Shown here: in pieces, positions 2,571 through 49,890 of the stretch | How the letters are laid out: each line of letters opens with the position of its first letter | Position numbering within the stretch: position 1 is the first letter of the stretch | Position numbers and translations under genes: made by a program | Notes under the pieces: generated by a model | The model's database searches: none | Told to the model about the DNA's origin: nothing | What the model saw: only the letters and a program-made list of their open reading frames with translations | Assembly (NCBI GenBank): GCA_024137785.1 | Contig: JAHRHZ010000085.1 | Coordinates: 2,670,057-2,724,169, forward strand | Origin: Ginglymostoma cirratum | Lineage: Eukaryota | Direction: 5' to 3' | DNA length: 54,113 bases

Positions 2571-2575
2571 CATAC

Positions 2576-21590: not shown

Positions 21591-21796
21591 TAGGGAACAT
21601 GGTTTTAAAAAAATCAGAGGTTGACCGTTTAAAACAGCATTACACATATATTTGTTTCAGAGATCTAGGAGTTTTTGTGACACTCTTCCTCAAAAGATCG
21701 AGGAAACGAGGTTCTTGAATATTTTAACGTCACAGATTGATAGATTCTGGTGGAGAAAAGAGGTGAAAGGTTATAAGGGTACTGTTTGAATGTGTC

Positions 21797-22668
21797 ATAT
21801 TCCCGTCCCCTCCCTTGTCCGCCTTCTGCAGGGATCGTTCCCTCCGGGACACCCTGGTCCATACTTCTTTCAGCCCCAAAACCTCCCCACAGCCCTCTGG
21901 CACCTTCCCCTGTAACTGGCGAAGGTGCAACACCTGCACATTTACCTCCTCCCTCCCCATTATCCAAGGGCCCAAACATACCGTCCAGGTGAAGCAACAC
22001 TTCACCTGCACTTCCAAGAATCTAGGCGACTGCATTCGCTGCTCACAGAGTGGTCTCCTCTACATTGGGGAAATGAAGCGTAGACTTGACGACCGCTTCA
22101 CAGGACATCTACGTTCTGCTCGCAAAAAAGACCCTGAACGACCTTTGCCTGCCACTTCAATGCACCACCTTGCTCCCTGGCCAACATCCCTGTCTCCGGC
22201 TTGCTACAGTGTTCCAGTGTAGCCCAGCTCAAGCTGGAGGAACAACACCTCATTTTCCACTTGGGGACCCTGCAGCCCTCTGGACTCAATATTGAGTTCA
22301 ATAATTTTAGGTCCTAAACTCTTCCGTGTCCTAGCCGGCCACCCTACACACCCCCTGTTGTTAGTCACTAACACTCCCCATTAACAACTATTTACCCTCC
22401 CAGCCTGATCTTTAGCAACTCCTCTGTCTGTCCAATTGCCTTTGTCGCTCTTTGGGCTCTCTGCTATCATTTACTCCCTACCCACAAACCTCCCTATTTG
22501 CTGCACCTGAACTGACGTTTTCCCAGCCACCATCAGTTCTGAGGAAGGGTCACAGGACCTAAAGCTTTTACTCTGTTTTCTCCTCTACAGATGCTGCCAG
22601 ACCTGCTGAGCTTTTCCAGCAACTATGTTTTTGTTCCTGATTTACAGCATCCGCAGTTCTTTTGGTTT
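21797..22668 (+). mobile_element. Penelope-like element, second subfamily, 3' part
   Basis: 'SAFCRDRSLRDTLV..GTFPC..RRCNTC..LYIGEMKRRL'; tail with degenerate ctgaggaagggtc hammerhead. Confidence 0.88.
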
Positions 22669-24020: not shown

Positions 24021-24214
24021 ATATCTATTTGCTCAACACTCATGTGTTAAAATGTTAATGTATGCTTGAATTTTGTCTAAAAACGGCTGCTTTTGAGCCG
24101 TGATTTTGGGATTCTATTTCGACTTACATTGTGCTGTGGTGAATGTACAATAAAAAAAGTTATTTTCGCTTCTCACTGATCCTAGTCGTCTGCTTCTTTG
24201 AACGCGATCTCACA
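24021..24214 (+). repeat. ERV 5' LTR (truncated)
   Basis: 24105-24214 matches 28131-28239; AATAAA; ends gatctcaCA just before the PBS. Confidence 0.8.
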
Positions 24215-24565: not shown

Positions 24566-26048
24566 ATGCTGTGGCAGCTACGACACTACTTTGAAATACA
24601 TTTTTTGTTAGAGGAGACTCTAACGACAATAGTGCGGAAACATAATGTTCCAAAAGGACAGTGGTCCCTGGAGGACATGAAACGTGTCTGGGGAGAAACC
24701 ACCCGGCAGGAGAACAAGGGCAGGGCTAAATGTTCCCTCACATTAACGGCACAACTCTGCCAAAGAAATGAACTCATGACCCGGTCAGCTCAATACCGAG
24801 AAATAAATAAACTCAAAGAACAGGTAAAAGCCATGCACGAGCAACTGCAGAAGGAGAGACCCAAACAAGAGGAGGCTGAAGTTAAAATACAGAAGCTTGT
24901 ACAGGAGAACAGGAAACTGAAATATGAACTGACAGTTTTGTCAGTTTCTCCCCTGGCTCCAAAGACAATTCCGAGTCGATACCCAACCACCCGAGAAATC
25001 CAGGAAGTGATTAAACGAAACAAAGCTCTTAAAATTCTCTTAGCTCTTCAAACTGAGGATTCCTCTAGCAGTGACAGTGATGAAGACTGTACACCCCCAA
25101 CACCCTTTTTAGAGCCCCTTAAAACCAAAAAAAGTAAAACCTGAGAAATTAGTGAGGCAAGGATTAGAGGACGGCAGGGAGGTCGATGTTCCAACGAGAT
25201 AAACCGAAAACCACATGGTCCATGTGCCTGTGACCCCTGACAACATTGACAGGTGGTCGAGAGAAATGTCTCACCCAAAGAAAGGGCTGATGAAAACCTG
25301 GGAAAGCCTAGACCGGTTAAGGGGAATATACTTGCTCCATCCCTGGGATGGGGTACAAAACCTCACTGTCATAGTCACCAAGAGAGAGGGACGCCTCCTC
25401 CATGAGGCAGTTATACATGAATCCGAACAGGAGCTGCAAGCTGGCTGGACAGCAATAAAACAGAGCTGCAGGGATTCAGTCCACCGAAAACCGATTGGAC
25501 AAAGGTCACTGTCTGCTGCCAAAAAGCCACTGAGGAAGTCCCCATATAGAAGGAAATGTTCAGGACAACCTGGAAGGAATATGCAGTGGTCCCAAATGTA
25601 AAGGATGACAAAGATTTCGAAAACTGCGACTCCGGCCCGCTGAAATCTGCCTTTGTGGCAGGACTCAAACCAGAGCTCGGTAAAATGCTGAAACTCACTC
25701 AACTGGATTGGGACCAAAGGGGTATCAAACACTATGTGTTTGTCCAAGCCCACCAGCTCGACCGGGAAATGGGAGCTCAGGTGCGAGTCGTGCAGACAGG
25801 ACAAGTAAGACAGACCCCTGGTAACCCTGGAACAACCCAGGACAGACACCCAGGGAAATGTCAAGTCTGTGGGAAGGAGGGTAACTGGTCCAAGAATTGC
25901 TGACACAGGGGGAAAGGACACAGCCCCCGCTAAGAGCCCTAATGAAAGAGAAACCTCGGTGGCAGGAAATAATCCCAACCCCCTGGAACAGTTCAAAAGG
26001 CTGTCCGTCCAACAGCGGCAGGAGCAACTGGATTTGACAAAAAACTGA
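24566..26048 (+). pseudogene. gag: ERV gag (frameshifted)
   Basis: ORFs 24566-25144, 25215-25601, 25556-25903; 'LKSAFVAGLKPEL', degenerate knuckle CQVCGKEGNWSKNC. Confidence 0.8.
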
Positions 26049-26099
26049 GTGAGCCCACTCCATGCCCCTCCACGCTGCTACTGGCTTTATGCGACTATA

Positions 26100-27860
26100 T
26101 GCGACTATATGACTACATGCGACCATGAAGGCGGGTGACCTGGACATTGCGTGTCTCTTGGTCGCAGGAGCAGAATAACATGCCTTCCCCCGAAGTCTGA
26201 AGCCAACCTCCCGCAAGACGGGACAGGAAAGACAGCCTCCGGAGCAGGAGCTGACAGGATTGAAATAAATAAAAACTAATCCAATAAATATTGCATTTGG
26301 CCCCCACTAACTGGTAACCTGCGTATGGGTAGGACCTGTAGCTCAACCGCTCCTCAGGATGAATATCCTTTCTCAATTAAATTCATCCCTACACTTCAAT
26401 GATGGACGGATGGGGTGTTCTATTAGAACACTTTAGAGGGAATATTTAAAGGACCACCCCATCTGAGCGAAAGACAAAGATGATTGCAGGTTACTAGAAA
26501 TGGAACCTGCAACATTTACAGGGATACCCCCGCCTTGCACCAATAGTATCCCATCAGCCCGATGTCAATTACGGGAGTCCTTCCAATAAGTCAAAGACAC
26601 GAGGAAAAGGGAATCCTGGTTAAAACACACAGCACTGTGGAAGCCCAAGGTAATGCCCTGGCAGATCAAGCAGCTAAAAGAACTGCCTCCAATCACTCCT
26701 GCCCAGAGCCTCAAATGCACGTCTGCTGGCTCGACACTGGGGCAACAATCAAGATCTGTAATCAATGCAGAGTGAGTGTTCCCGAAAGGAAAAATGGGAC
26801 TGGATTGAGAATGGAACCAAGGTATACGAAGACGGAATTTGGAGGCGCCGTGAGTCTAATCGCCCAATTGCACCCACTGCCCTGATGCCATATCTGGCGC
26901 AACAAATTCACTCCTGGGGATATTTGGAACCGGAACACAAGACAGCCCGGTTACAAGGCAGCTGGTGGGGACGAGGCTTTAAAAGATATGCTCGGACCAT
27001 ATTAGACCGCTGCCTCACCTGCCTCAAGAACAACCCGGGAACCAAAGTGCAAGTCCCCGAACTGAAAGCACCACCGCCCCCAGGATCATTCCAACACTTA
27101 CAGGTTGATTATTTCTTGGTGCCACGCTGTACAAGGATTTTCGGACGTTCTTGTCATTGTGGATAGTTTCTCTAGGTGGGTAGAAGCTGCACCCGCAAGT
27201 AAGGCCACTGCCAACCACACAGCCAAGGTGCTGTGTAGGTAGTACATACCCCGGCTGGGGAGTACCCACCAGCATCGACTCAGACCAGGGGACCCACTTC
27301 GCAGGAACAGTGTGTCAGGAGGTCTGCCAATTATTAAGAATTGAGTGGAATTTTCACTGCCCATGTCACCCTCAATCTCAGGGCAGCTGGAAAGACTGAA
27401 CCAGACCCTGAAACAAAGGCTGGCTAAATACCACCAGGAAGGAATACCCTGGCCACAGGTATTACAAATAGTGCTGTGTAGTGTCAGGGCTACTCCCAAC
27501 AAAACAACAGGCAGGAGCCCGTTTGAGATAGTAACAGGCAGGCTGATGTCCCTACCCGGGACAATACACCTGCGAGAGGCCGACTGTCATCTTATGAGCG
27601 ATGCCCTAATGTTCTACTGTCCGGCACTAACCGTTAAGTTCTTCCTCACAGGTATCGACTGCCTGGACGGACCAGCCAGAGGGAGGCCATGCCATTGTAC
27701 CAGGCATGTGGGTACTTGTGAAGAAGGTCCAGAAGGAACCATTATATACCAAGTGGGAGGGACCATACCAAGTACTACTGATCACCCAGTCAGCTGTCAA
27801 GGTTCAGGGAAAGAAGGCCTGGACTCACATCTCACATATCAAACGGACATCTTGCAAAAT
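26100..27860 (+). pseudogene. pol: ERV pro-pol (RT mostly deleted; RNase H end and integrase)
   Basis: 'LLVAGAE' degenerate protease site; 'QGNALADQAAK'; 'CLTC', 'LQVDY', 'DSDQGTHF', 'SGQLERLNQTLKQRL', 'WEGPYQVLL'. Confidence 0.88.
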
Positions 27861-27899
27861 AGAAGACGCGAGACTGAATAGACACCATGACATCCTCAA

Positions 27900-31179: not shown

Positions 31180-32770
31180 CATCTTCCTCCAGATCAACTG
31201 GACCAAAAATTCCGGACTCCTGGTCGCTCCGTGGTGGATGAATTCTCTGCCAGATGAGTTGGGGGGGTTCATCTGGAGCACCCACCCATCTCCTCTACCT
31301 GGGGCTATACCTTAGCTCGGCTGAGGTATCCTGGCCGGGAGCAAATTGGCAGGAGCTGGAGGCCAAAGTCTCGGCTTACCTCGGCCGCTGGACAGGCCTG
31401 CTCTGCGTGCTGTCTGACAGGAGCCGAGTGCTGCTTATAAACCATGTTGGGGGAACGGCTGCTCCCTTTGCCCCCTCCTCCTGGTTTTGATGCTGACATC
31501 CAGAGAACTTTGGTTCACTTCTTCTGGGAGAAAAAGCCGCACTGGGTCATGGCACAGGTTCTGAATCTCTCTATTGCGGGGGCGTGGGGGGGCGGTGAGT
31601 CGCTGGTGTGTGCCCACACCCAGGTGGTGGCACCTTCAGACCTTGCAGCGATACCCTTAAATTGAGCCATTTTCTCGGTGCTGCCCCCTGGTGGCGTAGT
31701 ATTCCCGCCAGTTCCGTCACCTCAATTACGACGCACGCAGCCCTGTTTATCGCCAGTGAGGGTTTGTAGGTGTCCCTCAGACCACTGCCTGTCTTTTCCC
31801 AGGAACCTGTTCACTGTCTGGGACATGGTCGCCGCGGACCTACCCCCCGGCAGGAGTGGCAGCCATCGTTAGAGAGCCGCTGCTGAGGAACCCGCGCCTC
31901 CACAATCACAGGATTGAGTGGCTGGTGGAGGGGAGGGCCGTGCCTATGGGGGTGACCAGTGTCAGGGATGTGCTGGGGGGTGAGGGGCCTAGGCTGGATG
32001 CTGCCACAGGAATTGGCACGCAGGGCGGCAGTAGACACCCGGCTCATAGCCACTGCCATCCAATGCCTTAAAACAGCAGCGCTCGTACCCGACATTATGG
32101 GCCAGGTGGAGGATGTTCAGGTGTGCGGTGGGATCCCGTCTGCGTGTACCCCTGCCCAGACAGAATTTCACATTGGCCCCAGGATCCCGTACCTCCCCCG
32201 GGAGCCTGTGCCCCACAACCTGAGCTGCCTCCGGAACATAGTTAGAATGGATTGGAGTGCGGGGAAATAGCGGACCCCATACAGACTGCTGCTGCACACC
32301 ATCCACCTCTTCTCTTTCACCCACCGCCCGGGCACACCTTGCCGTGCCCATTTACCACCGGGCGGCGGGGATCCCCAGTGTAGGGCTCTCTACGCAGGAC
32401 CCCTCCCCCTTTCCCTTGGGGATCTGTGGGGGGGGCGGGTGTTGCACACAGCAGTCCCATGGAACTGCGGATTGCGGTGATTCACGGACTCCCAGCCCAA
32501 CTGTCTGTTTTATGGCGCTGTGGGTTCCGTGGACCATGTGGATATTGGGTGTGGGTGTTTTCACTCCCTTTTCAGTTATCTTAAAGATCTCCTTTTGTGT
32601 TTCTGGCTGCACTTCAGCCCCACGCTCCTGATCTTTGGGCAACCGGTGCAGAGTGGGGTGGGGCAGGTCAGAGGATCCCCTCATGGGTCTGCTCCTGGGC
32701 CTGGCCAAGCTCGTTAATAACAGGCCCAGGCAGCGGGGGCATTATGGCCGACTGCCTGCCCCTCTTCCAT
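31180..32770 (+). mobile_element. Tx1/L1-clade LINE ORF2 3' fragment
   Basis: 'LYLGLYLS..NWQELEAKV..LGRWTGLL..RVLLIN', 'IQRTLVHFFW', degenerate C-terminal knuckle and 'LLLGLAKL'. Confidence 0.85.
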
Positions 32771-33679: not shown

Positions 33680-34425
33680 CTTGAGCCATACAGAGACGCT
33701 GAATAGACTGGGACTATTTGCTCTGCAGCATCAGTGGCTTAGGGCTGACATGGTAGGGTGGTCCAAAACTTGACAGCATAGGTTTAAGGTGAGACGGGAA
33801 ACATTTACGAGTGACTTAAGGGAAAACATCTTGAGACAGAGAATGGTACGTCGATGGACTGTGGTGCCAGAGGAGTTAGTGGAGGATGGTCCAATTTATA
33901 GATTTAAGAGGCATCTGAATGGGCACATGAACTGGAAGGGTTCTGAGGAATAGGTGTCAAATACTGACAAATGGGACCAGAATAATCCAGGATCTGGTCA
34001 GCATGAATGACAGAGGTTGCAATGGCCTAGTGGTATTATCTCTGGACTGTTAATCCAGAAACCCAGATAATGTTCTGGGGACCTGGGTTTGAATACTGCC
34101 ATGACAGATGGTGGCATTTGAATTCAATAAAATATATGGAATTAAGAGTCTCATGATGACCATGAATCCATTGTCAATTGTCGGAAAAACCCATCTGGTT
34201 CACTAATGTCCTTGAGGGAAGGAAACTGCCATCCTTACCCGGTCTGGCCTACATGTGACTCTCGACCCACAGCAATGTGATTGACTCTTAACTGCACTCT
34301 GGGCAATTAGGGATGGACAATAAATGCTGCCTAGCCAGCGATGCCCTCAGCCCATAAATGAATAAAGAAATTAAGAAGTTGGACCAAAGGGTCTGTATGC
34401 TTGCTGTACAACTCTACAACTCTGT
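33680..34425 (+). mobile_element. CR1-type LINE 3' fragment interrupted by a SINE (34012-34372)
   Basis: CR1 3' sequence resumes after the SINE (gttggaccaaagggtctg..ctctacaactct). Confidence 0.8.
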
Positions 34426-36105
34426 AACAGGTTTTATACAATGTACTTAAAAACCTGGCTGAGGATTACCATCAAAGGAAGGAAAACATCCCAACCAATG
34501 GCAGATGGCTAATGCTTTTCCAAGTTGAAAGGATAACAATTTGAATTCATATCGCACCTTTAATATCTCAAGGAAAGAATCAATGTATATGTTGACTCAA
34601 ACTTTCCGTCAGGCCCATACTTCAGTTGCATTTGAAAATGTAATTAATTACATATATCCAGTGTCTTGCCATTTTCCCAAGTTGTTAATTTGTTTGAAAC
34701 GTCATTGCATTAACATCCATTGCAGCAGTGTGCACAGTTAAAAGGAGCATAGATCGAGCAGATAGATACATTTCCCCTTAGTACAGGCATCAATAACAAG
34801 AGGCACAGTTTTAAGGTGAGGAGCAGATGGTTTCCAGGGGCTTGAGGAACTTCATTTCACCCAAAGGGTTGTGGATGTCTTGAACTCACTGTCTAAGAGA
34901 GCAATAGAGATGGGAAACCTCAAGACATTTCAGAAAAATTTAGGTGAATACCTGAAACCATGTATCATGGAAGGCCACAGGCCAAGAGCTGGGAAATGGA
35001 ACGGGAATAAATGGAAGATGGATGACCAGCATAGACACAAGAGCCAAAAGGCAGCATTTCCTTGCAGTTAAAAACCTCTTGTGACTCTGACTCTCACATC
35101 AGCATGTTTATTGTTTCGGTTTGGGACTGTTATGTCCACATCCACTGGGAAATCAGCACATGATGGTTCATGTGACCATTCAAGGGCAGTTTCAAAAACA
35201 AACATCACACACAAATAAACACTCCAACATCCAACAGCTATGGCCCAGTGATGCAAGTACCAGATTTTTGATGCAGTGTGTAATTTATTTCATAATGTGA
35301 TCAAAAATATAACGAGAAATGAGACTGACCGGGATATACATTAGCAATAATTTTGACTGATGGCTTCGTCAATTTTTTGATAGTATTTCATTTCTGTAAA
35401 CTAGTAACTTTATCTGAAGAATGCTGAACCATAAAGAGAGATATGTTATATTTCCAGAATACAGGTCCCATGAATTCAAACCTACGCAGTACATGGTGGT
35501 GCATCTCACTTTGAGTAAAAGTGTGGTCGAGTTAAAATGTTAAATGGGGAAGACATTTCACAATGTCTTGGTGCATTATTTGGAAGTTACAAGATTCAAC
35601 CATTTTGCAGCAAAACCAGAAATAAATTGCAGATAGGCTAGATATGGTGAAACTGAATCTTTTGATGAGGACATGAAGTATGATGGCGCAAATATAAAAT
35701 TAATGTTAGGTCATTCAGATCAAAATCAGTAAGGGACACTTCACAAATCGAGACAATGCTAACAATTCTCTGCTCCGAGGCAAAGAGATCTGCATGCATT
35801 GCGCATGAGAGAAAGAAAAACAAATTGTTCTTCCCCAGAAACTCGTGGGGAAATTGTGACGGGAGACAGTATTTATTTTGGAGGCTGTGCACTGAAAATA
35901 AGATAAATGGACACTGTTTTGAGGGGAAACAACATGCAAAGCGTTGTTTGCAGCTTGGAGAAAAGTACATGAGAAGCGAATTAAAGCGTATGAAACAATG
36001 TTACCTTTTGGAGACATTGGGTCCGGACAATCTGGCACCATTTCTTCTGGGATCAGGACAGCTCAGCACAATAAGAGCCTTCTGATTGACCCGGCTGCAG
36101 TTTGA

Positions 36106-36335
36106 CACAGAAACAAAAATGGAAGTTGCTGGAAAAGCTCCGCAGGTCTGGCAGCATCTATAAAAAGAAATCAGAATTAACGTTTCAGTCCCGGTGACTC
36201 TTCCTCAGTACAGATCCCGGACCCGAAGCGTTATCTCTGACTTCTCTTCACAGATGCTGCCAGACCTGCTGAGCTTTTCCAGCAACTTCTGTTTTTGTTT
36301 CGGAGTGACGGCATCCGCAGTTCTTGCAGTTTTTA
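36106..36335. mobile_element. Hairpin Penelope terminal insertion
   Basis: gaagttgctggaaaagctc.gcaggtctggcagcatct / agatgctgccagacctgctgagcttttccagcaacttc arms. Confidence 0.85.
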
Positions 36336-36779
36336 TGCAGTTTGTCACAGATGCTGTGGAGATGTGAAACAAGGGGAGTCGACCTCAAGCTTTCTGCGTC
36401 ATTTTCTCTCTCACGGGTTCTTTGGGGGCGGGAAGCTGGTTGTGTCTTGCCTGGGGCAGGGTGTGTTGGAATGTTGGTGGTGATTTGGGGTGTTCAGTTG
36501 CTGGGTCAGAATTAAAACAGATTTTGATTTCTCCAACTGTTCCTGATTAAATAATAAATAAGTAATTGGTGATTCTTTTCACCAAGAGAACAGACAGACT
36601 GATGTAACATCGACATCAACCACAAAGGAGATAATTGGGAAATTGCTTAGTATTTGGACAAATAAATTGGTTCCTACAATTATGCAAATTAAATGACTCT
36701 GGGTCAGATCACAGACTGTAATAAGGGGTCTTGAAGCGTTGATGTGACAGCACTGCTTACTTCCAAAGACATCCCTCAG

Positions 36780-37330
36780 CTAAGGAAACACGAGGCTCGT
36801 TACTAAACAACCGAGTAATGCCACCCCCCTAAAACACCAACACCATCAGCAAGGACAGCACCCTCAAAAGTACTCGTTTCCATACACCCGGACAAAGAAG
36901 GCCACCAATCCGATTGGGACAACGTAATGATCCGAGGACAAGCCAACCAAAGACACGCTAAGTATTTCCTAGAGACCTGGAACTCCATCAACAAACATGT
37001 GGACATAGACCCCCATATACCAACCACTCTGAAGCAGAACTGGAAATGAGGCCAACCACCACATCAGACCAGACCCACAGAAGGGTTTAGGCCCGAAACG
37101 TCAAGTTTTCCTGCTCCTATGATGCTGCTTGACCTGCTGTGTTCATCCAGCCCCAGGCTTGTTATCTCGGATTCTCCAGCATCTGCAGTACCTTTTATCT
37201 CTGACAGAAATAACAAGCGGGACAGATCAACAATGCTTCATCAGAAACGCGCTGATGGTGTTATCTAGTATGTTGATGAAATGTCTGCAAACCAACCTAC
37301 CAGCTCGAGGAACAAATCAACAACCTCACA
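36780..37330 (+). mobile_element. Divergent Penelope-like 3' fragment with a nested PLE end (37081-37203)
   Basis: Degenerate 'GHQSDWDNVMIRGQA..YFLETWNSINKH'; ctgatgg..gatgaaatgtc hammerhead-like end. Confidence 0.65.
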
Positions 37331-39139
37331 CTTCAGTTTATTTTGTGAAACAGAGATTGATGAAAATACAACATGACAACAATTTTAAACTTAATTTGTG
37401 TATGATTGATGAAAATATAACATGACAACAATTTTATGTTTGATTTGTGTATAACGTCAAGCAACATTTTAAATAGTATTCCAGTTACTACCGAGAAGAG
37501 CTCAGGGAGTCATTATCTGAGAGAGGTTCTCAACAGGTTGACGAGAAGAAGGGAAAGCAGCTGGGGACTGCAGTACTGTCGAAAGCTACACCAGGACAGA
37601 AACTGTAATGTGATGAAAGGAAAATCAAGGAAACTTCCACTCTCTCTCAGAGCTTATTGTGATTAGTCCATTTAGGCAAGAAATCTCCAAGCATTGAACA
37701 AGAGAACTCAAAAACATTTTCCGAATCTGACTTCAAAACACGGCACCTTCATATCAGAAAGAGAAATCTTCAAACGAGTGACAGGTATGTGGAGATAACA
37801 AATTGACTCCGTTCTTTTGGGGTGGTCAAGAGTAGCAAAGGCATCAGAGGTAAACATAGCATTTGGGTGAGGAGTTATGGGGAAAGGTTAATGAGGAGCA
37901 GTGACAGGAGGTATATGGATGAGAGGGGAAGATAGGTTGGATGGGATCAGATGTCGAGGTCTGTGGTGGGAGTGTTAGATATCTGTATGCGGTGCTTAGT
38001 TCCTTTGAGTGAGGATCAGTTTCCTAGAGCAGTCCAAGTTAAACAGATCTGGTAAGATGGAGCTGTCTGTTGGGGTGGGATGAGGTCTGTTAAACAGGAG
38101 TCAAACTTTTCATTGGACAGAAGATATTGTAAGTTTTATTCTGATCGTTTGTTTTCCTTCATGACCCACAGACACATAGAATGTAGCAGCAGGAGTAGGC
38201 CATTCAGCTCTTTGAGCCCAGTCGATTCTATACAATTCTGGCTGATCATCCAATTCAGATCCCTGTTCCTGCTTTCTCCCCGTATCCGATGATCCGTTAG
38301 GAACGATACCTGCATGTTTCTTGAAGGTCTTCAATGTTTTAGTTTCAACAGATTCCATGTAAATAACAAGTAACATGTAAATAACAAACAGAGATAATGC
38401 TCATGAGATTCAGCATGTTTGGCAGCACCTGTGCAAACACAAAACAGTCAACATTTCCCGTACAGTACGACCCTTCTTCAGAACTGTTAAGTCAGCTAGA
38501 ACCCTCTGAAGGTGCTGACTATAATTCAGAGTGTGTTCCAGGCACCGGGTGACTTCCCACCAGAAAAGAAAACTTCCAGACACTTAACACAATGTCAGTA
38601 AGTCACGACTTCCAGACATCCCAGTTGCACCTAACCTCCAAGTATCTACAGACTGGAAAAACTCAGCTTCATGCGCATTCCCAATGATTGTTATTGTATT
38701 GGTGAATGAATACACGGAACTCGTGCTTGTTTACATGATGCTTTTTTTACCCCTGTACTTTTTATTACAACATATTTCATTCAGCCTCAAACTAGACATT
38801 GATCAAAGGTGAGTCTGTTGCAAGAAATATTTCTTAGATACCAGAAAGCAACTTGTTTCTTCAAATATTCTCCACATAATGAAAATTTCTTCTATATTGA
38901 AAGCTACTTTATGCGATTCTAAATAGTTAACAAATACACCACATGTTGACATGCACGCCTCAGTTAAAGTCACTGCCTCAGGGTGAGCTGCCATCTGTGG
39001 TAACTAACAGCAGGTATTTGCTGACAAACTGTGCAAAGTGGAGCCATCTACATGTCGGTTTAATGTGCAATGCATACCTTCAGCTGAGCTAACAGGCAAG
39101 TGGAAATGTTGTGGAGCCAAGCTCGATACATGAAACGCA

Positions 39140-39486
39140 GGGAGGAGATGATATTATCATTGGACTGTCAATCCAGAGGCCCAGGTAATGTTCTGGGGAC
39201 ATGAGTTTTAATCCCATGGTGGCAGGTGGTGGAATTTGAATTCAGTGAAAAATATGGAATTAATAACATAATGATGACCATGAAACCATTGTATAATTAT
39301 CAGGCAAAACCCATCTGGTTCACTAATGTCCTTTCAGCAATAAAACGGCCATCCTTACCTGGTCTGGCCCACATGTGACTTCAGACCGACAGGAATGAGG
39401 TTGAATCTTACCTGCCCTTTGTGCAATGAGGGATGGGCAACAAATGCTGGCTTAGCCAGTGATGTCTTAAGCCGATCAATTAATAC
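39140..39486 (+). mobile_element. tRNA-derived SINE (counterpart of 10451)
   Basis: Same sequence and flanks as 10451-10806. Confidence 0.8.
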
Positions 39487-41850
39487 AAAAACAAAATTCC
39501 TTTAAAAACATAATTGTTTCGTTTACTGATACTATTATTGAGCGTTTGAGTTTTGGAATAGTTTAGAATTCAATTACATATTTGGTCATTGACCTGCAGA
39601 GTTACTGGTTCTCTGTCCACTCCGGGATATGTGTGAAATGATCTGAACACAATTGCAGCAGATCACATTTCTGCAGTCAGTCTTCTCACATTTATTGATT
39701 GATGGAACACAATAAAGTACATACATGACAGGATGAGGAGACAGCAACTTTTTAACAGCAGGGTCAAGTTATGATTCAAATTTCATGGCGTAAAACTTCA
39801 AAACAAATTTCAACAGTTTCTGGAAAAGCCAAGTATTGCTACAACACAGCAACAAATGAAAGACCACAGATCTCAAACATAATGCTGAAGACAGGTTACC
39901 TCAGTTCACATCATCTCCAAGAATACAGGATTTCTTAACTGATAAAACACAGCTCACATATATCGATGTTCGACTGGAGAATTTAAGTTTGAATTCTCTC
40001 CAAGACTACCTTGGCTGTGACTTAATTACATACTTGGCAGTTGTTCTGCTGAATATGATTAAATACAATTCATGTTTTTTTTAACCTGATGTGTACATAG
40101 CTGGTCATCTCACTGATTGCTTACAGTTAGTTGTCCTTCAGAAACAGGCGGTGAGCCATCTTCTGGAACTGGATTAGTCAGTGTGGTTCAGTTCTATCCA
40201 ATACGCTGCTAAGATGGGGATAGGTAATTTGGATCCAGGACAATCTCAGATGATTGCAATTCTAAGGTGGGTAATACATATCATGACATATGACTGCCTA
40301 TCTTCTATCCAAGGGGTAGAATTGCATAGTATTATGGAACATTTCCACTTACCGTACCGAGACGAATGCAGCTGTAACAGAACTCTGGAGAGTGAGATTG
40401 TCCAGGACAAAGCAGCACCCTTCACCTGAAAATGCATTCTTTTAAATTATCATTTTCCCTCACGGGCAATAATTACACTTCAGAAGGAAACAAACTGACT
40501 TAGGGGAGTGATTAACCGGGAATCATAAAGACAGTCAATGAGTATGAATAACACACATAAACAGTAAACCTGTGATGTGTTTAAACTGAAAACTTTCATT
40601 TCACACTAAACATCCTTCTGAACATCTCTGTGAGAAAAGGATCGCAACAAATTGTAACAATCACTGATTTACAGGCTTATACATGTTCCAAGACCCTTGT
40701 AATGCCATGGAGTTGATGGATTCCCGAGACAGAAAATACTCAATGCGGTTTCCTCATGATGAGAGCATGTCTCGACAGAACTAAGGTGGAACATTGGAAA
40801 GAAGGTTGCTGAAGCACCAGAACAATATGATAAATGAATCATTCAATAACCAGTTTGTATGTCACGTCAATTAAAGAAACAATGTTACGAATTACAAGAA
40901 TTCGAAATATACTTGAACACAATAACGTAATGAAGCCAACAAGAAGATCAAGTCCTCTCTATTTTAAATTTGTACAGACATTTAAAAAGTAATACGAAAA
41001 GGGATTTCGGCAGATTAATCTGATATTGCTGCTCAGTTCTTTAGGATATAGGAGTGAGAGGTTTATAACTGTGCCCCACTTGCCTGCTTGCGTTCCAGGG
41101 TGTAGCAGTAGTTTCGCCTCCGAGTCCTTCAAATTGCTACGCTTACAGTGGGCTGCTTCTTCCCAACATTTCATTTTAAAAAGTTAACAACACTGAAAAC
41201 CAAAAGCACTTGGCTCTGCCTGCCGAACGAGGAGCCAACAAATCAAATCATACCATTGAGGATTGAGTGTGAAGCATGGCAGATTACAGCACTTCAAGTG
41301 CACATCCAAGCAAAAACAACTTGTGAAAGGCACAAAAGTGTCTGTCACTGATATCTGTTCAGGCAACGGGTCCTTGACAGCAATCAAACTCTGGGATAAA
41401 CTGTTTCATCGTCTCCCCGTTAAGCTTTTCTGTCAGTGTCTTTCAACCTATAATCCCTGCATCACTGACTTCAACATAATGGTTACTGACCTTTTCCCCA
41501 TCTACGATGTCTCCGCCCATCTCAGTTTAGTGCATCCCAATTAAAGTACACTCAGTTCGTCTTGTTTCAATGTCAAAATCTTCATCCCATCCAATCAAGT
41601 CCCAACAACAAGTCCCTAAATACCTTTTGTACCGTCTCTAGTGTCGTCATTTTTGTGGCAGTTTGCGGTTACAAAAACCAGCAGATCTTAGTTGAAAAGG
41701 CATGCATTTTTATCAGTCAAAAATTAGTCATGTCCTCATTGACCCACGTCTACGTCTGTGATGAAATTGGAGACGGAGACAAGCGTTTAAGAAGCAGTTG
41801 TCCATCCTCTTCTCAGTCACAACTAATGGTCTCAGATTTTCACTGCCAAA

Positions 41851-41905
41851 ATGTCTATGCGTCTTTCACTATGGGATGTCTGTCTGCTGTGCATCTTGTG
41901 TGCAG
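41851..41905 (+). CDS. Copy B leader exon
   Basis: MSMRLSLWDVCLLCILCA+G|gtacac; 55 nt, phase 1. Confidence 0.85.
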
Positions 41906-44900
41906 GTACACATTTCTGGTGCTGTGCATTCACCGATCATAAGCAAGACATAACGTGAACTTACAGCTAGATATCTTAAATAAATTGATATTTTTAATTC
42001 TTGTATTTTTTTCAAGTCAGTTATTCCCAGATCTCATTTGTCACTTGGTCCATCAGGAAAAAAAACGTAACATTCTATTAGGACAATAGTTTAAAAATGT
42101 GAGAATTAGTCAAAGAGTAAAATGCGGTAAATTACTGTTGCGGCAACAGCCTGGAATAATGATGTTATTTGGGTGGTGCAGACTGTCCTTCTTGTTTAAT
42201 CTCAGTGTGTTTCCTTGGTTGACAGTTGCTGCCAATTCAGCCAAAGTGAATCCGGACCTTACACGAAAAACGGTGCAGAGAGGTTCATCATTTCTTATGC
42301 AATGTCCTTTCTCCTACAAAATCGACTATTCAAATATTGTTGCCCACTGGTGGAGAGAAGATAATAAAACCTTTCTGCGGGAGGATAGCAAAAAGATTTT
42401 CCATGTAAATAGAGGAGAAGCTTCCCTTAACCTCCTGAATGTGACTGTCCGGGACGCTGGAACATATCACTGTGCAGCCACGTATCAGAAACAAAAGGTT
42501 GGGAAAGCTGCTGTGCAACTTAATGTATATGGTAAGTGTCACCGCAGATAAACGTGGAGTCTTAGCCGCTTAAAAACAATCAGCAGCAGTAAACAAATTA
42601 ATTTATTAGATACAGACATATCGTGTAACATATTTGCACTTATTTAAAATGAAATGTGTTCAAGAATGTGGAGACCTTGGAGAACCAGTACCAATCTCAA
42701 AGTTTGAGATTTACTCTGTATTAAAAATGAATCACTTTGGGACGTGGGCATCCATGGCTGGCCAGCATTTATTGCCTGTTCCTAATTGCCCTTGCCAAGG
42801 TAGTGGTGAGCTGCCTTCTTGAACCGCTGCAGTCCATGTGCTGTAAGTAAACTCACAATGCCATTTTGGAGGGAAATTACAGGATTTTGACCCAGTGACA
42901 ATGAAGGAACAGTGATATATTTCCAAGTCAGGATGGTGAGTGGCTTGGGAGAAACTTGCAGATGGTGGTGTTCCCATATGCTTGCTACCCTTGCCCTTGC
43001 AGATAATAGATTGTGGATTTGGCAGGTGTTGTGTCAGAGTGTTTAATGAATTTCTGCAGTGCATCTTAAAGTTACACATTGCTGTTACTGAGTGTGTGTC
43101 GTGGAGTGACTGAATGTGGTGCCAATCGAGTGGGCAGCTTTTTACTGGATGGTGTCAAACTTCTTGAGATCTTTTGGACCTGCAGGCATGCAGGCAAATG
43201 GGGAGCATTCCAACACACTCCTGACTTGTGCCTTGTAGAGGGTAGACAGGCTTTGGGGAGTCAGCAGTTGAGTTACTCGCTGCAGTATTGCCAGCCTCTG
43301 ACATACAGTTCTATTTATATGGCTCGCCCAGTCCTGTTTCTGCTCAATGGTAACCCCCAAAATGTAGATAATGGGGAAATCACTGACGGTGATGCCACTG
43401 AATGCTAAGGGGTGGATGGTGAATTGGAGAATGTGTTTGCTTGGCATTTGTGTGGTCTGCATGTTCCTGTCAACTTTTCAGCCTAAACCCAGATGTTGTC
43501 CAGTTCTTGCTGCACTTGGTCATGAGTTGCTTCAGTTTTATGCATTGAGGTTTTGGAGGGAAATTGATTGCAATATTTTAAATTTTTGTCTGTATTTGAT
43601 TATGGACTGACAGGATGAGCATCCTTGAAAATATCTGCAATATTATGCATTTTGAAATGTTCCTTACCTCACGAAATGAGCCAAATTCTCAGTGCCATCA
43701 CTTGGACGGTTTTTGTTCAATTCGTCAGATCCAGGTCCAATTTCTCATACTGTTTGGAATAGAAAAGTGCAGTATGATGATTCAATCATGTTTCTATTAT
43801 TAAGTCGTCACAAATTCTGGAAACTCTTTTTTTCTAAATATGCAGGAGGTATATTGAAAGGATTTGAGGTTTTTTGAAATGATAAATGTAATATCAATTT
43901 CATGTACTGTTCGTAGCAACAATTAATGCAACTGTCATGCTGGAAATAAGTTGCTTTGGTCACCAAAACGTACATTTTTGCATAAAATGCAAAATCAATT
44001 TATCGAAATTGTGTTATTTACCATTCATCTCCACCAGCTCATCTGAAAATTGTCTCCGTTCCATCCAAAGACCTTTTTTCTGCTTTTCTCAGCCTCCACT
44101 GCAGGACATCTGACGTTTACCCAAATGACTTTAAACTTACTGGTTACAAAAATGGTGAAAACATTTTGACAGGATTCGGGAATGAACAGCAGGTAAAACC
44201 TGAGGATCTTTACGAAGTCGTCAGCACCTTGGAGTTGCAAGAGGCAGTTGAGAGCGGGACAGTTTATGCCTGTCAAGTATATCACGATTCAAGCTCATTT
44301 CCAGCAAATGCCAGCTACACTGTGAACAATAAAGGTAACATTTCATCATATGTGGTACATTGAATGCTGCGATATCATTCAACATGGGTAAATAAGCATA
44401 CAGTGGTGATGTCAGTTATTTGAGTATGAGTCAGTCAAAGTCAAAATTTGATTGGATTGGATGGATTAAGGTTTTCTTTCTTTCTGTAGTTTGACACTGA
44501 TATATAATTATCACAAGTGACTTTATCAAAAACTAGATGTGAATCTTCAGCATAAGTCAAAAAATTACTTTCATGCATAGACTGATGACTCAAAAAGAGC
44601 GACAAGGTCAATGTTAATTCTTGGGAAAGCGTGAACAGTATCGAATTTGGTCAGGCCACATTTGGAGTACTGCATGCAGTTCTGGTCACTCTTTTATACA
44701 ATGAATATTATTAAACTGGAAAGAGTGCAGATAAAATTTCCTAGGATGCTACATGGATTGGAAGATTTGAGATACAAGGAGAGGCTGGATAGGCTGGGAC
44801 TTTTACCCCGGAGCGTCGGAAAGGGTGACCATATAAAAGTCTGTAAAATCATGAGTGGCAGCGTTAAGCAGATAACCAACAGCTTTTCCCCATGGTAGGG

Positions 44901-46321
44901 GAATCTAAGGCTAGAGGGCACAGGTTGAAGGTAAGAGGGGAGAGATCCAAAAGAGCCCAGCGGAGCAATTTTTCACACACATGGTGGTGCGTGTCTGGAA
45001 CAGTCTGCCAGAAGTAGTGTTGGAGACGAGTACAATTTTGTCATTTAAGAAACATTTGAACAGGTACATGGATGGGATGGATGTGGAGGGGTATGGACCA
45101 AATGTAGGCAAATGGGACTAGTTCAATTGTCAAAACTGGGAAGCGTGGACAAATTGGGCTGAAGATGTGTTTCAGTGCTGTCAACCTGTATGACTATGAT
45201 ATAGCTGCACACATGCAGTAGATCTCGTTTCTTTCCCCCATTCATCAGAATGCCACAGATTTGATAAAATACAAACGATAGAGTCAAAGCTGTTTGGGTT
45301 GCAGCTGCAGAGAGATTACAATTATTTCAAACAAAGTTTGTCTCCATGGAAAACTCAAGAAAACCTGAAAGCAGGTTCCATTATACACTTTTTCTGACTC
45401 TAATCTGTACGCAATCCAACTAAACTACCACCAGACAATTTAATGTTTTGCCACATAGCTTGGAGAACTGAAAACTTATTGCAATTAGCACTGTTTCCAT
45501 GAATTTTACATGTGTCATTAGTTGAGTTGCTTTTCCCATTTACCTATTTCTCTGAGTTCCAGACATTTTGTTTCTGGCTGCATATGGATCAGTTGAACAA
45601 AGAGTTAGCAAAAATTGAAATGCTGAGACTTTATGCACTCTATTTATCATTTGTGCAAGTCAGTACAATTGAGACTGATGTACATGTATCTTCAATTTCT
45701 GGTGCAGTTCCTAATTTTGATTTTATATTACCATTACAGATTTTGCCTCTAAAATCAGTGTTACTATGGCTGCCAGTTTTGCTGCTCGTGCACTTGCAAT
45801 TCTCATATTGACCGTGATGATTGCCAAAGGTTTTCTGCCATTTATCTCCAAAGGTATGAACAGGACTGAAAAGTCTCACTGAAATTAATTTAATTGGGAG
45901 CCGAATATGTGAACTGTACAATTTAAACAACTTTTTTTGTGAAACCATGTCCAAATATGTACCTTGCTTCAGGTCTTACTTCATGACAAATATAAGATAA
46001 GAAGATTCGAAGTTTCACTTTGCTAAGTTATGTTGGTGTAGATCAAAATTGTGATGGCAAAATTCATTGCTGAAAGGTGTTTCTCGAGCTTCAACCCTCA
46101 AAACATAAATTCAAAGCATCTCTGTGTTACGTTTCAAGATGTGTTGTGAAACTATTATTCCTATTCTACCCTGTTTATAAATGTTGAGTAGTAGTCAATT
46201 TACTTTTGGTTTCTTTGGTTTGCTGGTGAGTACAAGTATCAGCCTTTATGGTTATGACTTATGTCATTTTTATTTCTCAGGTCAGGGAAAGAAAATGTTC
46301 CATAGTTCCAACTCAGCATGA
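41851..46321 (+). CDS. SIRP-like V-C1 Ig-superfamily receptor, copy B (putative activating form, 270 aa; may be a pseudogene)
   Basis: Join 41851-41905, 42226-42531, 44038-44334, 45740-45853, 46281-46321 = 813 nt open frame ending TGA; requires a cryptic C1 acceptor. Confidence 0.65.
42226..42531 (+). CDS. Copy B V-set Ig exon
   Basis: gacag|TTGCT..TATG|gtaagt; QCPF..HWWRE..ASLNLLNVTVRDAGTYHC. Confidence 0.92.
42727..43540 (-). mobile_element. CR1/L2-group LINE 3' fragment
   Basis: 'ILGVTIEQKQDWASHI..LSTLYKAQVRSVLECS'; 3' tail shared with the SINEs. Confidence 0.85.
44029..44334 (+). CDS. Copy B C1-set Ig exon
   Basis: Open frame HLKIVSV..LHCRTSDVYPNDFKLTGYKNG..YACQVYH..NK G|gtaaca; ancestral acceptor reads CAT, in-frame CAG ends at 44037. 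Confidence 0.85.
44648..45200 (+). mobile_element. CR1-type LINE 3' fragment
   Basis: 'VRPHLEYCMQFWS..LERVQ..YKERLDRLGL'. Confidence 0.9.
45740..45853 (+). CDS. Copy B transmembrane exon (contains Arg)
   Basis: DFASKISVTMAASFAARALAILILTVMIAKGFLPFISK; CGT at 45787-45789. Confidence 0.85.
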
Positions 46322-46328
46322 GGATGTG
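46281..46328 (+). CDS. Copy B cytoplasmic exon 1 (+1 nt; stop at 46319-46321)
   Basis: GQGKKMFHSSNSA*; 48 nt vs 47 nt in M. Confidence 0.7.
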
Positions 46329-47329
46329 GTGAAGCAAATTTCTTTTATTCTGTCTATTTTCATTTTCATGTATATTTGAACAATTTAAACTGGGAACCCA
46401 AATATATATTTCGAACGTGTCAAGACAAGTCTTGAAGATTTCATCAGCTCTCAAAAGCACAACTTCAGCTGAATAAAAATAAAATAAAGAAAATAAAAAT
46501 TGGTCTGAAGTTACGCTAAGTGTTGCAACTATTTTACATTGTGAAATATGTTTATTGCTGTGTAAGCTGTATTGGTTAACTTATGCTGAAATTTTCAACG
46601 ATCAATCATAGGTTTGATGCTGACAAATAGCTTTGACTTTCATTTTCTTTTGTGCTTAACAAGTGACAATGTGCTGAATAATTTTGCAGCGTTGATGACA
46701 GACATGACATTACATTGGGATGATGACTATTCTGAATGATATGTTTATGGTTTCAAATAGAGATGATTCTTCCCTCCTTCCTTTTTGTGCTGTTCAAAAT
46801 TAATTCATTAGTCTGAGTTTGGTGATTATTCCTGAGTTCTGCTCGGGACTCTGCCAAAGCATTCAATATGTTATGCAGACAGTTTGCACAAGTTGGCTTC
46901 CTTAGGAAGCTTTCATTGTCGGCTGCCTCTCGACTACTGCAACGTGCTGCAGTACCATACGATCTCGAAAAAGAAACAGGCGAGGTGTTGGATGCAGATT
47001 ATTTTCTTTTCAATTCTCAAAACGTGCTTATCAGTGACATGGGAAAGGAAGCTCCCAGTCTGTGGCTTCTGAAAAAGAGTAGGTGGGACTTACTCAGAAA
47101 TAACTGAGAATGGTTTGGTCAAACTTGAAGTCTTTGTTGCCACCTTCAGAAGGCACAATGCAAAGACTCACATTAATTCTTGACTGCAATTGAATGCAGT
47201 ACAGACCAGCGGTTTAACCCCTTTGAATGCATTTTTAAGCAATTAGATTTTTAAAATGAATCCTACTGCCTTATTATCTCAGTTGCAGTCATGGATCTGA
47301 ATTTACTTTCTTTTAGAAAAAAAAATTCG

Positions 47330-48262
47330 ACGTAGAACTGTACAGCACAGGAATGGACCTTTGGCAGATGATTTGTGCTGAACTATTCCCTTCTGCCTGC
47401 CCTTGGCTCGCATCTCTCCATTCCTTGCACATTAATGTGCTTACCTAAAAGTTCCTTAAATGCCCCTAATGGAATCTGCCTCCACTATCACCCTTAGTAG
47501 TGCATTCTTGACTCCTACCGCTCTTTGTGTAAAAACATACCCCTCACATCCCCTTCAGCCCAACAAGTCCACACCAACCCTGTGAGCATCCCACACAGAC
47601 CCATCCCCCTGCAACCCACCTCATCAACATGTCCCTGAACACGATTGGCAATTTAGCATGGCCAATCCACCTAGCCTGCATATCTTTGGACTGTGGGAGG
47701 AAACTGGAGCACCCGAAGGGAAACTCACGCAGACACGAGGAGAATGTGCAAACTCCACGCAGACAGTCACCTGAGGGTGGAATTGAACCCAGGTTCCTGG
47801 CACAGTGAGGCAGTAATGCTAACTACTGAGCCACCGTGTCACCCAACATTTGAGCCTCAATGTTTGATCTCTGAAAATGCAGCAGCTCACATTTACCCAG
47901 ATTAAACTCCATCTGCCATTTCTACATCCATATCTGCAACTGATCTATTTCCTGCTGAATCCTTTGACATCTTCTACACTATCCTCAACTCCACTGATCT
48001 TTCTATCGACTGCCAAATTACTAACCCAGCCAGCTACATTTTCACCCAAATCATTTATATATATATGTATCACAAACAGAAGAAGTCTAAGTATGGATCC
48101 CTGTAGAAGACCACTAAGCCACGGACCTCCAGCCTGAAAAACACCCTTCAACCACTACCCTCTGTCTTCGACTGGCAAACGGATTCTGAATCAACTTGAT
48201 CAAGTCACCGTGGATCTCATGCATTTTAATTTTCTGGATGACCCTACCATAAGGGATCTTGT
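47330..48262 (-). mobile_element. CR1-type LINE fragments
   Basis: 'QGSIL..LLFVIHIYINDLGENVAGWVSNLAVDRKISG' RT motif and 3' tail; absent from M. Confidence 0.8.
47555..47845 (-). mobile_element. HE1-like V-SINE
   Basis: Minus strand ggtggctcagtagttagc..gggttcaattcc..gtggagtttgcacattctcc..gtttcctcccacagtccaaaga (tRNA head plus V domain). Confidence 0.85.
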
Positions 48263-48993
48263 TGATACTGCAAAATAAAAACCCAACTCTTTCATTGCAT
48301 CTGGTACCTGCAATTCCCTGACAACACTGCAGCTAAATTACCTGGACTGCAGTAAGTCAGGAAGCTGGCTTCCTACTGGATGCTTAATAGTAACTAGTCA
48401 TTGGCACCAAATACTGGCCTTGCCAGCAAGTCTTGTATCCCGTTAAAAATAGCTTGTTGTGCAGAATTGTCCCACTTCTGCACTGCAGATGCAGCAAAAA
48501 TAAAATTCCTTTCTCAGCAATCTTCAGAAAATGAAGTCTTTATTCATTATTGTATGTCTTTCTATGAAATGTTCCAGCTGCACTGCTGTAGGTAACAGAA
48601 TGAAGTCCCCTGATGTCCAGATGCAAAAATTAGCAGTGCATCAGATCAAGAGAAAACACAATTATCTACGATTGAGAAATACCTCACAGGAGGCCAAAGA
48701 ATACACTTTCGAGCACTGAAATAGTGTGGTTTACATTTTAGACAAAAGCGCACCATACTTGTTGAATTTTTTTCATTGTCACCAATCTGAACATGTTCCT
48801 CCTCAAATAGCTGGCACATTTTCTAACTTAAAACATAAATAATTTACTTTAAAGCACCCTGTCTGAAGTCAAGTGTACGTTGCGAATTCTTTGAAAATGC
48901 ACTGCACCTTTGCCTTCGCTTCAGACTCAAATACGTTTATTTATTAATGTTTGGATGGCCTATTGAAATAATTGCCTTCCTTTATTTACAAAG

Positions 48994-49890
48994 GAACAGC
49001 AGGGTGATTCTAAAGTTAAGTGTCTATTAGCAGTGGTAAGTACAGTTATTCCATTCTCTCAAACTGACTTACTGATTTAACAAATTTAACGTGAGGGAAT
49101 TTTCAATCAAAACTGCACCATGTACCCTCAGAATGAAAGACATGACTAATTTATTTCAGATAACTGCCACTTATAATTTTACTTTGAAGCCAAGTGACGT
49201 TATTATTTTATTGCTTTTAATAAACACAGAAAAATTTATTGTTGCTTCATTTAATAAACTGTATTGCACAATGAATTTGTAGCAGAATGTAACAAAACAG
49301 AAAGTCAACTATCAGATTTCAAAAACGTCACACATTTCATTCATCATACATTGAACTGAGGAAAGCAAACTTTTCTTCAGAACACTGCATAATTGCAGGT
49401 AAAAAAATCAGATTTTTTTCTGATGAAGGGTTTAGGCCCGAAACGTCAAGTTTTCCTGCTCCTATGGTGCTGCTTGACCTGCTGTGTTCATCCAGCCCCA
49501 TGCTTGTTATCTTGGATTCTCCAGCATCTGCAGTACCTTTTATCTCTGCTCTTAATCTAGTTAGTTCTGAGGAAGGCATAATTCCGAAACAACAGGAAGA
49601 AGTCATAGTATATACAGAGGTACATTTCAGGTCATGTATGACAATAATCAGTTCATTCATGATCATGAGTTGATTTGGAGATGATATTGAAAATTCCTTT
49701 GTGTAATTTTCATCTAGAATGATTTAAATGAATGGTAATTCAGTCTCAATGCTGTTTTTCAGACAAAACACTGCATGACAGACAGCAAGCTGACTTACCT
49801 TGCTGTGAAATTCAATGATTCCAGTACATCATCGAAACACAAGCACCAACAGAAAGTCCAGTGTATGCAGCGGTGAAAAGCAGGTACTAA
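48994..49890 (+). pseudogene. Copy B relic cytoplasmic ITIM exons (48994-49035, ~49548-49619, 49763-49890)
   Basis: Homologous to the M tail exons; downstream of the stop, TE-disrupted and frameshifted. Confidence 0.8.
49418..49547 (+). mobile_element. Penelope terminal fragment replacing the 5' part of the ITIM exon
   Basis: ctgatgaagggtttaggcccgaaacgtc..tatctct joins directly to GCTCTTAAT (AL-N of LTYAALN). Confidence 0.9.

Follow-up and report, generated by a model that had tools for sequence, protein, structure and literature searches.

Organisation of the locus and gene model of copy B

The DNA analysed here is a stretch of 54,113 nucleotides from the nurse shark, Ginglymostoma cirratum (contig JAHRHZ010000085.1, positions 2,670,057 to 2,724,169), hereafter referred to as the window. 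It is vertebrate DNA with many Penelope-like and long terminal repeat (LTR)-type repeats, and it contains three copies of one receptor gene type, which are designated A, M, and B. Copies M and B lie inside a tandem segmental duplication of approximately 16 kb (approximately 5.1-20.8 kb versus 34.0-50.6 kb), the non-coding parts of the two units being 70-80% identical, and the only two V exons of the window belong to copies A and B. Copy B, the main subject of this work, carries an arginine in its transmembrane (TM) segment at the position where copy M carries a glycine, and its cytoplasmic tail is broken. We favour, with somewhat more confidence than doubt, the reading that copy B is a dying or dead member of an activating-type lineage, whose arginine-bearing TM segment would derive from an inhibitory ancestor, rather than a working receptor.

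Copy B follows the exon plan of the receptor family described below, with leader, V(J), C1, TM, and cytoplasmic exons that are all joined in phase 1 (Table 1). Leader, V, C1, TM, and the first cytoplasmic exon (cyt1; the following ones are cyt2 and cyt3) add up to 813 nt, with leader, V, C1, and TM open, so the coding sequence proposed in a preliminary description of this DNA agrees with the exon coordinates in both length and frame. The 813-nt model depends, however, on a C1 acceptor that is not the ancestral one. Homology searches for copy B were run with its single exons as queries. In a search of the PDB, the C1 exon matched immunoglobulin (Ig) light-chain constant domains and MHC II beta2 domains. 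The nearest relative of copy B is the Stegostoma protein P0156 (76% identity in V, corresponding to 77/101 residues, and 86% in TM). The family-specific motifs used in the comparison of copy B with its family are WWR in V, LQCRTS..FYP..NLTW in C1, and DFASKIS before the TM segment.

A receptor family of cartilaginous fishes

A phmmer search with the V exon against 1.84 billion representative sequences returned multi-Ig giants and single-V shark proteins with 43-73% identity, and the best single-domain matches in this set were members of the family, with 47-73% identity. The members are pipeline predictions from sharks (Heterodontus, Stegostoma, Rhincodon, Hemiscyllium, Chiloscyllium, Scyliorhinus, and Heptranchias) and rays (Pristis, Hemitrygon, and Mobula), and their labels vary between SIRP-alpha-like, SIRP-beta-1-like, NCR3LG1-like, MHC II beta-like, and uncharacterized, that of P0156 being 'signal-regulatory protein beta-1-like'. 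The other members used most below include P0007 (XP_067905931.1) and P0008 (XP_067905013.1) of Heterodontus francisci, and P0072 (XP_048462082.1) of Rhincodon. A single C1 exon lies between V and TM in copy B and in every full-length homologue. When compared with the PDB, a profile built from twelve members matched an IgA1 heavy chain (2e-21), UrIg2 (7e-21), SIRP-alpha (4.5e-19), and B7-H6 (1e-15) to a similar degree. Judged by its predicted proteins, the family to which copy B belongs consists of V(J)-C1-TM receptors with a SIRP-like design that do not rearrange and that occur in cartilaginous fishes. Our search of the literature, which covered NKp30, SIRP, and paired receptors in sharks as well as V-C1 genes without rearrangement, found nothing on this family; it turned up UrIg and UrIg2, which are different, multi-C-domain genes.

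Two closer assignments were considered and rejected. Orthology with SIRP was discarded as undemonstrated because the family has one C1 domain instead of two and because the profile matches are unspecific. Membership of copy B in NKp30 was discarded because a C1 exon is present and because no NKp30 chain occurs among the listed PDB matches of V and of the family profile.

The family also comprises a second type of TM exon (e.g. HLIYRS..ILVII..IIFDHV), with an arginine near the outer end, an acidic residue or a histidine at the inner end, and short tails; it is present in P0157, P0158, P0021, P0164, and P0089 (Heptranchias, Chiloscyllium, and Scyliorhinus) and may represent an older activating class of the family. 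One of the public models, P0160 of Stegostoma, has an odd N-terminus (residues 1-25, MGTARCAQAVGEGEE...) that matches an open reading frame (ORF) on the minus strand at 31989-32351, in a repeat-like region between M and B; this part of the model is probably spurious.

The transmembrane arginine

Codon 16 of the TM exon is CGT in copy B and GGT in copy M (16978-16980), a single G to C change that replaces glycine by arginine exactly as first described. The residue replaced is the second glycine of a GxxxG-like motif, AGCAAGA. The arginine is residue 10 of the best hydrophobic window of 21 residues in the TM segment of copy B, whereas the best window of 19 residues lies further downstream and does not contain it. 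The membrane register is thus ambiguous, and a buried position of the arginine would follow from the longer window and not from the shorter one.

In KIR, SIRP-beta-1, LILRA, and NKp30, a buried basic TM residue pairs with an acidic TM residue of an adaptor bearing an ITAM (immunoreceptor tyrosine-based activation motif), which makes the receptor an activating one. By analogy, an ITAM adaptor would be bound by the arginine of copy B through its own acidic TM residue.

Lesions in the tail of copy B

The first cytoplasmic exon has 48 nt in copy B and 47 nt in copy M. With this additional nucleotide, the reading of copy B is shifted to GQGKKMFHSSNSA and ends at a TGA after 13 residues, whereas copy M reads GRGTKISINPTQQEDV and continues into two further exons; the insertion and the early stop had both been recognised in the preliminary description. 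The new short tail of copy B is devoid of tyrosine, and no immunoreceptor tyrosine-based inhibitory motif (ITIM) is left in frame. Further downstream, a repeat element of 130 nt has taken the place of the cyt2 acceptor and of the 36 nt that followed it, in which the LTY of the first ITIM was encoded, with a loss of approximately 270 nt, and a deletion of one nucleotide in cyt3 eliminates the last tyrosine motif. The three frame-breaking lesions of copy B (the insertion in cyt1, the loss of the 5' part of cyt2, and the deletion in cyt3) therefore all lie in the 287-nt tail, as had been claimed, and none occurs in the approximately 780 nt upstream. The chance of finding three of three lesions in the tail is approximately 0.02 if they fall at random over a coding sequence of approximately 1068 nt, a figure that treats as independent lesions that are not fully so. 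We conclude that the tail of copy B appears to have lost constraint long before the ectodomain, as a model with an activating stage predicts.

The stop in cyt1 is situated 7 nt ahead of that exon's donor, and cyt2 no longer has its acceptor; with cyt1 joined to cyt3 in the transcript, nonsense-mediated decay would not be triggered by this stop.

In the stretch comprising cyt2, the following intron, and cyt3 (49546-49888 in B versus 19737-20082 in M), the two copies are 87-91% identical, compared with approximately 76-80% in the other introns. The corresponding divergence, K, is 0.10-0.15, versus 0.24-0.30 in the other introns, which makes a gene-conversion tract likely, in a part of the tail that copy B cannot use.

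It is very unlikely that the arginine, the frameshifts, or the tryptophan to glycine change described below are errors of the assembly, and that copy B is in reality an intact inhibitory gene. The deletion in cyt3 and the insertion in copy A are indeed located at short runs of A or T. The indel in cyt1, in contrast, is not part of any homopolymer of more than 2 nt, in cyt2 a whole repeat element has come in and sequence has been lost, and the arginine substitution is common to two other species. Several independent lesions would all need to be errors.

Polarity and age of the arginine

The homologues were aligned with each exon of the window as a row of its own. At the column of interest, a glycine is present in copy M, in P0160 and P0163 of Stegostoma, in P0072 of Rhincodon, and in P0007 and P0162 of Heterodontus. 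An arginine is present in copy B, in P0156 of Stegostoma (zebra shark), and in the fused model P0161 of Hemiscyllium (epaulette shark), within its first gene. Among the homologues with glycine, P0160, P0163, P0007, and P0162 have long tails with tyrosine motifs, and P0072 does not; P0160 is of the M type, with the full tail of four tyrosines, P0163 is of the A type, with an ITIM tail, and P0072 is of the M type. This co-occurrence of glycine and long tyrosine-motif tails across the homologues points to a glycine TM segment with an ITIM tail as the ancestral state, and to the arginine as the derived one. The conversion of an inhibitory receptor into an activating one, as first suggested for copy B, is thus upheld in its direction, from glycine and ITIM tail to arginine and dead tail, but a present activating function is doubtful on account of the damage to C1 (see below).

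The TM segment of copy B is identical to that of P0156 at 32/37 positions and to that of copy M at 28/37, while copy M is identical to P0160 at 32/37. A tree of the TM exon, built on 37 columns, groups M with P0160 (support 93/88), and the best tree contains a clade of B, P0156, and P0161 (64/77). Grouping by species was rejected by the approximately unbiased (AU) test both for the nurse-shark copies and for the zebra-shark copies (p 0.001 and 0.0015), and a recent origin of copy B from copy M within the nurse-shark genome is rejected by the same test. As the TM exons group by type and not by species, the switch to arginine appears to be old and not private to the nurse shark. The independent origin of an activating counterpart that had been put forward for copy B does not stand, since the same column holds an arginine in P0156 and P0161. 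On these alignments, the arginine of copy B is independent only of that of P0008 of Heterodontus and of that of the second, short-tailed TM type. A single origin of the carpet-shark arginine is the best reading, not a proven one.

The case of P0008 is separate. Its V domain is 94% identical to that of P0007, its arginine lies one TM position earlier, and its model ends just after cyt1. P0008 apparently arose by an independent conversion from inhibitory to activating.

P0072 of Rhincodon, whose V domain is cut short in the model, has a TM segment of the glycine type and a tail that ends in ...KINKSNST, with the same shifted frame and stop as the ...FHSSNSA of copy B, apparently reached through a different indel. 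Truncation of the tail without an arginine may therefore be another recurrent outcome in the family.

The two Stegostoma proteins P0156 (arginine) and P0160 (glycine) are identical in V (101/101) and very similar in the 3' half of C1 (58/66), and share only 26/37 residues in the TM segment. Such a pattern would be expected if conversion homogenises the ligand-binding domains while the signalling ends stay distinct. The tails of the arginine-type genes are broken in different ways: P0156 keeps LTYAAL and has its last exon in another frame, the model of P0161 has no tail exons, and copy B is cut in cyt1. These differences fit a tail that was no longer under constraint once the arginine had arisen. 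Between M and B, the 3' half of C1 together with TM gave a non-synonymous divergence (dN) of 0.114 and a synonymous divergence (dS) of 0.280, i.e. a ratio of 0.41. As dS equals the divergence of the introns, this ratio indicates that purifying selection acted during some part, at least, of the divergence between the two copies. The ectodomain had been proposed for such a comparison, and this pairwise value, which covers the 3' half of C1 with TM, speaks against wholly neutral evolution there.

These results also bear on the possibility that copy B is a plain pseudogene in which the arginine is incidental, without any activating stage, the arginine-type genes elsewhere being inhibitory or dual receptors. 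P0156 does retain one ITIM (LTYAAL) alongside its arginine, the B-type clade is weakly supported, the tail of the whale-shark P0072 is truncated without any arginine, and, with the best 19-residue window excluding the arginine, the helix might slide and leave this residue at the outer interface. Nevertheless, we consider this explanation improbable. An arginine at the same column in three species, in a TM segment that remained distinct while V was homogenised, is hard to account for without selection on the TM segment. The tails of the arginine-type genes carry their lesions at differing places across species, and P0008 pairs an independent arginine with a tail that ends after cyt1.

Copies M and A

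Copy M, with which B was compared in the preliminary description, is not an intact inhibitory gene. Two stretches of M are collinear with B, 14842-15269 with 40921-41347 and the sequence from 15272 with that from 44139; the 2791 bp of copy B lying in between (41348-44138), which contain the leader and V exons as well as the 5' half of C1, are missing from copy M. The exons left in M (part of C1, TM, and the three tail exons) are all open, which suggests either that the deletion is recent or that it is a collapse of the assembly. The tail of copy M has the tyrosine motifs LTYAAL, TMYTE, LTYLAL, and PVYAAV, and in the 3' half of C1 copies B and M are identical at 53/66 positions.

Copy A is an A-type relative of P0163 of Stegostoma. 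Its C1 exon contains one additional T in a run at 3299-3302, just ahead of NLTWHRNG. No TM exon of copy A was found in positions 1-3110 by blastn, tblastn, or a hydropathy scan. The 3.1 kb beyond copy A within the window include a Penelope-like element and a gap of N at 642-741, and the tail exons of copy A were not found there.

The duplication that gave rise to M and B reaches approximately 6 kb upstream of the genes (5095-10800 and 34000-40000), and its first unit contains an internal tandem duplication of approximately 2.7 kb (5095-7746-10400). Penelope-like elements, with GIY-YIG and reverse transcriptase ORFs, are located at 38-436, 11950-13754, and 21227-24043 and form part of the filler between the units. 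An LTR-type element with gag and integrase ORFs (24566-27881) also lies between the M and B units.

Table 1. Positions in the window of the three receptor gene copies, their exons, and associated features
Feature	Position	Strand	Remarks
Copy A	3097-4537	-	V approximately 4234-4537; C1 3097-3403
Copy M	15.3-20.1 kb	+	
M C1 exon, 3' part only	15272-15467	+	Deletion junction just upstream, approximately 15266-15271
M TM exon, Gly type	16931-17044	+	114 nt; good AG/GT sites
M tail exons	17462-20082	+	cyt1 17462-17508, cyt2 19700-19810, cyt3 19954-20082; intact tail
Copy B	41.85-49.9 kb	+	
B leader exon	41851-41905	+	Begins with the ATG at 41851; last letters GCA G|gt, phase 1; translation alignable to the P0156 leader (Stegostoma)
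B V(J) exon	42226-42531	+	Open; canonical Cys/Trp/Cys; Pfam V-set 8e-11
B C1 acceptor region	44026-44037	+	Ancestral cag now cat (44026-44028); in-frame AG at 44036-44037
B C1 exon, 813-nt model	44038-44334	+	Pfam C1-set 8e-10; ancestral start would be 44029
B C1 Gly codon GGT	44142-44144	+	M and A have TGG here, coding for the invariant Trp of strand C
B TM exon	45740-45853	+	114 nt; good AG/GT sites
B TM Arg codon CGT	45787-45789	+	Codon 16 of the TM exon
B cyt1	46281-46328	+	48 nt; TGA at 46319-46321
Repeat element in B tail	49417-49547	.	95-98% identical to 37080-37203 and 20893-21023
B cyt2 remnant	49546-49619	+	In the frame of M reads ALNLVSSEEGIIPKQQEEVIVYTE
B cyt3	49763-49888	+	Deletion of 1 nt; LTYLAV kept, terminal PVYAAV motif lost

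Ectodomain damage and present state of copy B

The C1 domain of copy B has accumulated several lesions. Its ancestral acceptor, cag, which copy A keeps at the homologous place, has become cat, and the substitute AG, 9 nt downstream and in frame, costs copy B three codons. The strand-C tryptophan of C1, encoded by TGG in M and A and present in 16/16 homologues, is replaced by a glycine. Among the columns conserved at 95% or more, copy B deviates at 4/26 (Tyr to His in V; Pro to His, Phe to Val, and Trp to Gly in C1) and the truncated copy M at 2/9, compared with no deviation in any of the 16 annotated homologues. Among the columns of V conserved at 85% or more, copy B deviates at 2/28. In the 5' half of C1, copy B is identical to its nearest relatives at 24-26 of 35 positions, whereas these relatives are identical to each other at 30-33 of 35. 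The Pfam C1-set score is 39 bits in copy B versus 50-52 bits in P0156 and P0160, and two conserved N-glycosylation sites of C1, NLT and NGT, are absent. Among the family members compared, the C1 lesions and the cyt1 frameshift are found in copy B alone. No public protein matching copy B was found in a collection of 5.8 billion sequences or in the 1.84 billion representatives, where the queries and hit sets were the V-exon ORF and the hits to P0072 and P0156; this is weak evidence.

With three substitutions at near-invariant positions of C1 and a lost acceptor, a present activating function of copy B is doubtful. With this damage to C1, and with its neighbours M and A broken as well, copy B is most likely dying or dead.

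Several observations speak against this assessment. The leader, V, C1, and TM of copy B are still open over approximately 780 nt, and all of its splice sites are good except one, for which there is an in-frame replacement preceded by a good pyrimidine tract. Since the C1 exon is in phase 1, skipping it gives an in-frame product in which V is followed by TM, so that the loss of the tryptophan could be bypassed; a precedent is provided by P0019 of Heterodontus, which is annotated as an isoform running from V to TM without C1. As regards the activating-type lineage itself, the B-type clade has a modest support (64/77 on 37 columns), and parallel origins of the arginine are possible. Moreover, a survey of shark data published in 2014 contained no FcR-gamma homologue (PMC4016189).

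Part of this evidence would suit a copy B that is alive as an activating receptor, in which the substitute C1 acceptor is used or C1 is skipped, giving an NKp30-like product, and in which an ITAM adaptor, engaged through the arginine, brings the receptor to the cell surface. The three frame-breaking lesions are confined to the tail, V keeps 26 of 28 conserved columns, the arginine is kept in three species, and the position of the stop near the cyt1 donor would allow the transcript to escape decay if cyt1 joins cyt3. We regard such a live receptor as possible but, on balance, unlikely. Three of its C1 substitutions affect columns that are invariant in 16/16 homologues, both N-glycosylation sites of C1 are gone, the C1-set score is lowered, the searched public collections hold no matching protein, and both neighbouring copies are broken. 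A bolder version would see in the B-type genes a functional activating class long kept by carpet sharks next to the inhibitory partners, with V homogenised by conversion and the TM types held apart by selection; nurse-shark B would skip C1 and yield a V-only, tail-less NKp30-like receptor with an arginine TM segment, signalling by way of a shark ITAM adaptor. To this version we give little credence.

Returning to a dying or dead copy B within an activating-type lineage, the following course of events can be proposed. The ancestor would have been an inhibitory receptor whose TM segment had small residues (AGCAAGA) and whose tail carried four tyrosine motifs. In one duplicate, in the carpet-shark lineage, the second glycine of AGCAAGA would have been changed into an arginine. 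This arginine form would have been an activating partner, obtained by the standard route from an inhibitory receptor, its pairing with an adaptor being proposed by analogy. The tail of the duplicate would then have become dispensable, and would have been broken differently in each species. Nurse-shark B would be further along this path, with its C1 acceptor, the invariant tryptophan, and other near-invariant residues lost.

Comparison with known paired receptors

The birth and death of activating partners are well documented in mammals, for KIR, Ly49, SIRP, and LILR. According to the general model of Abi-Rached and Parham (2005, PMC2213150), activating receptors originate through mutation from inhibitory ones, which represent the ancestral state, and they persist for a short time before they disappear. 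Copy B resembles the activating KIR (KIR2DS/3DS) and Ly49 receptors (PMC2213150) in several respects: an inhibitory ancestor with ITIMs, a point mutation by which the TM segment gained a basic residue, a tail truncated by a frameshift or a stop, and an ectodomain close to that of the inhibitory partner. These mammalian receptors are recurrent, short-lived, and often pseudogenes, as copy B may be. In contrast to them, copy B has a V(J) and C1 fold and not a C2-type Ig or C-type lectin fold, it belongs to another vertebrate class, and its arginine-type TM lineage looks old, being common to three carpet-shark species.

The closest parallel in architecture is the pair of SIRP-alpha and SIRP-beta-1, which, like the shark family, have at the N-terminus a V domain whose end is J-like and, next to it, a C1-set domain. 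SIRP-alpha shares with the inhibitory shark member a tail of four tyrosines arranged as two units, each made of an ITIM and a second tyrosine, and in SIRP-beta-1, as in copy B, the TM segment holds a basic residue and the tail is very short. The shark family differs by having one C1 domain, whereas SIRP has two (V + C1 + C1), and the basic residue is a lysine in SIRP-beta-1 and, in copy B, an arginine at a former GxxxG glycine.

Dual receptors of the KIR2DL4 type recall P0156, in which a TM arginine coexists with one remaining ITIM and which looks like an intermediate stage of conversion; copy B differs from them in that it has no ITIM in frame. NKp30 consists of a single V domain followed by an arginine TM segment. 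Copy B differs by its C1 exon, and only the hypothetical C1-skipped product would mimic NKp30. The pipeline-predicted shark genes P0156, P0160, P0163, P0007, P0008, and P0072 are like copy B in their exon plan and in the sequence families of leader, V, C1, and TM.

The B locus displays in a cartilaginous fish the same steps as in mammals: a point change that puts a basic residue into the TM segment, the decay of the tail with its ITIMs, and then, probably, loss of the gene. Apart from the arginine itself, the arginine and glycine TM exons differ at 8/37 residues, which makes them usable constructs for the study of adaptor pairing in sharks, although copy B itself is probably not the most suitable example of the arginine-type genes. 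The presence of one arginine in three species, together with the independent arginine of Heterodontus, suggests that this mechanism is as old as the jawed vertebrates. The same pattern suggests that adaptors with acidic TM residues were already shaping the evolution of receptors at that time.

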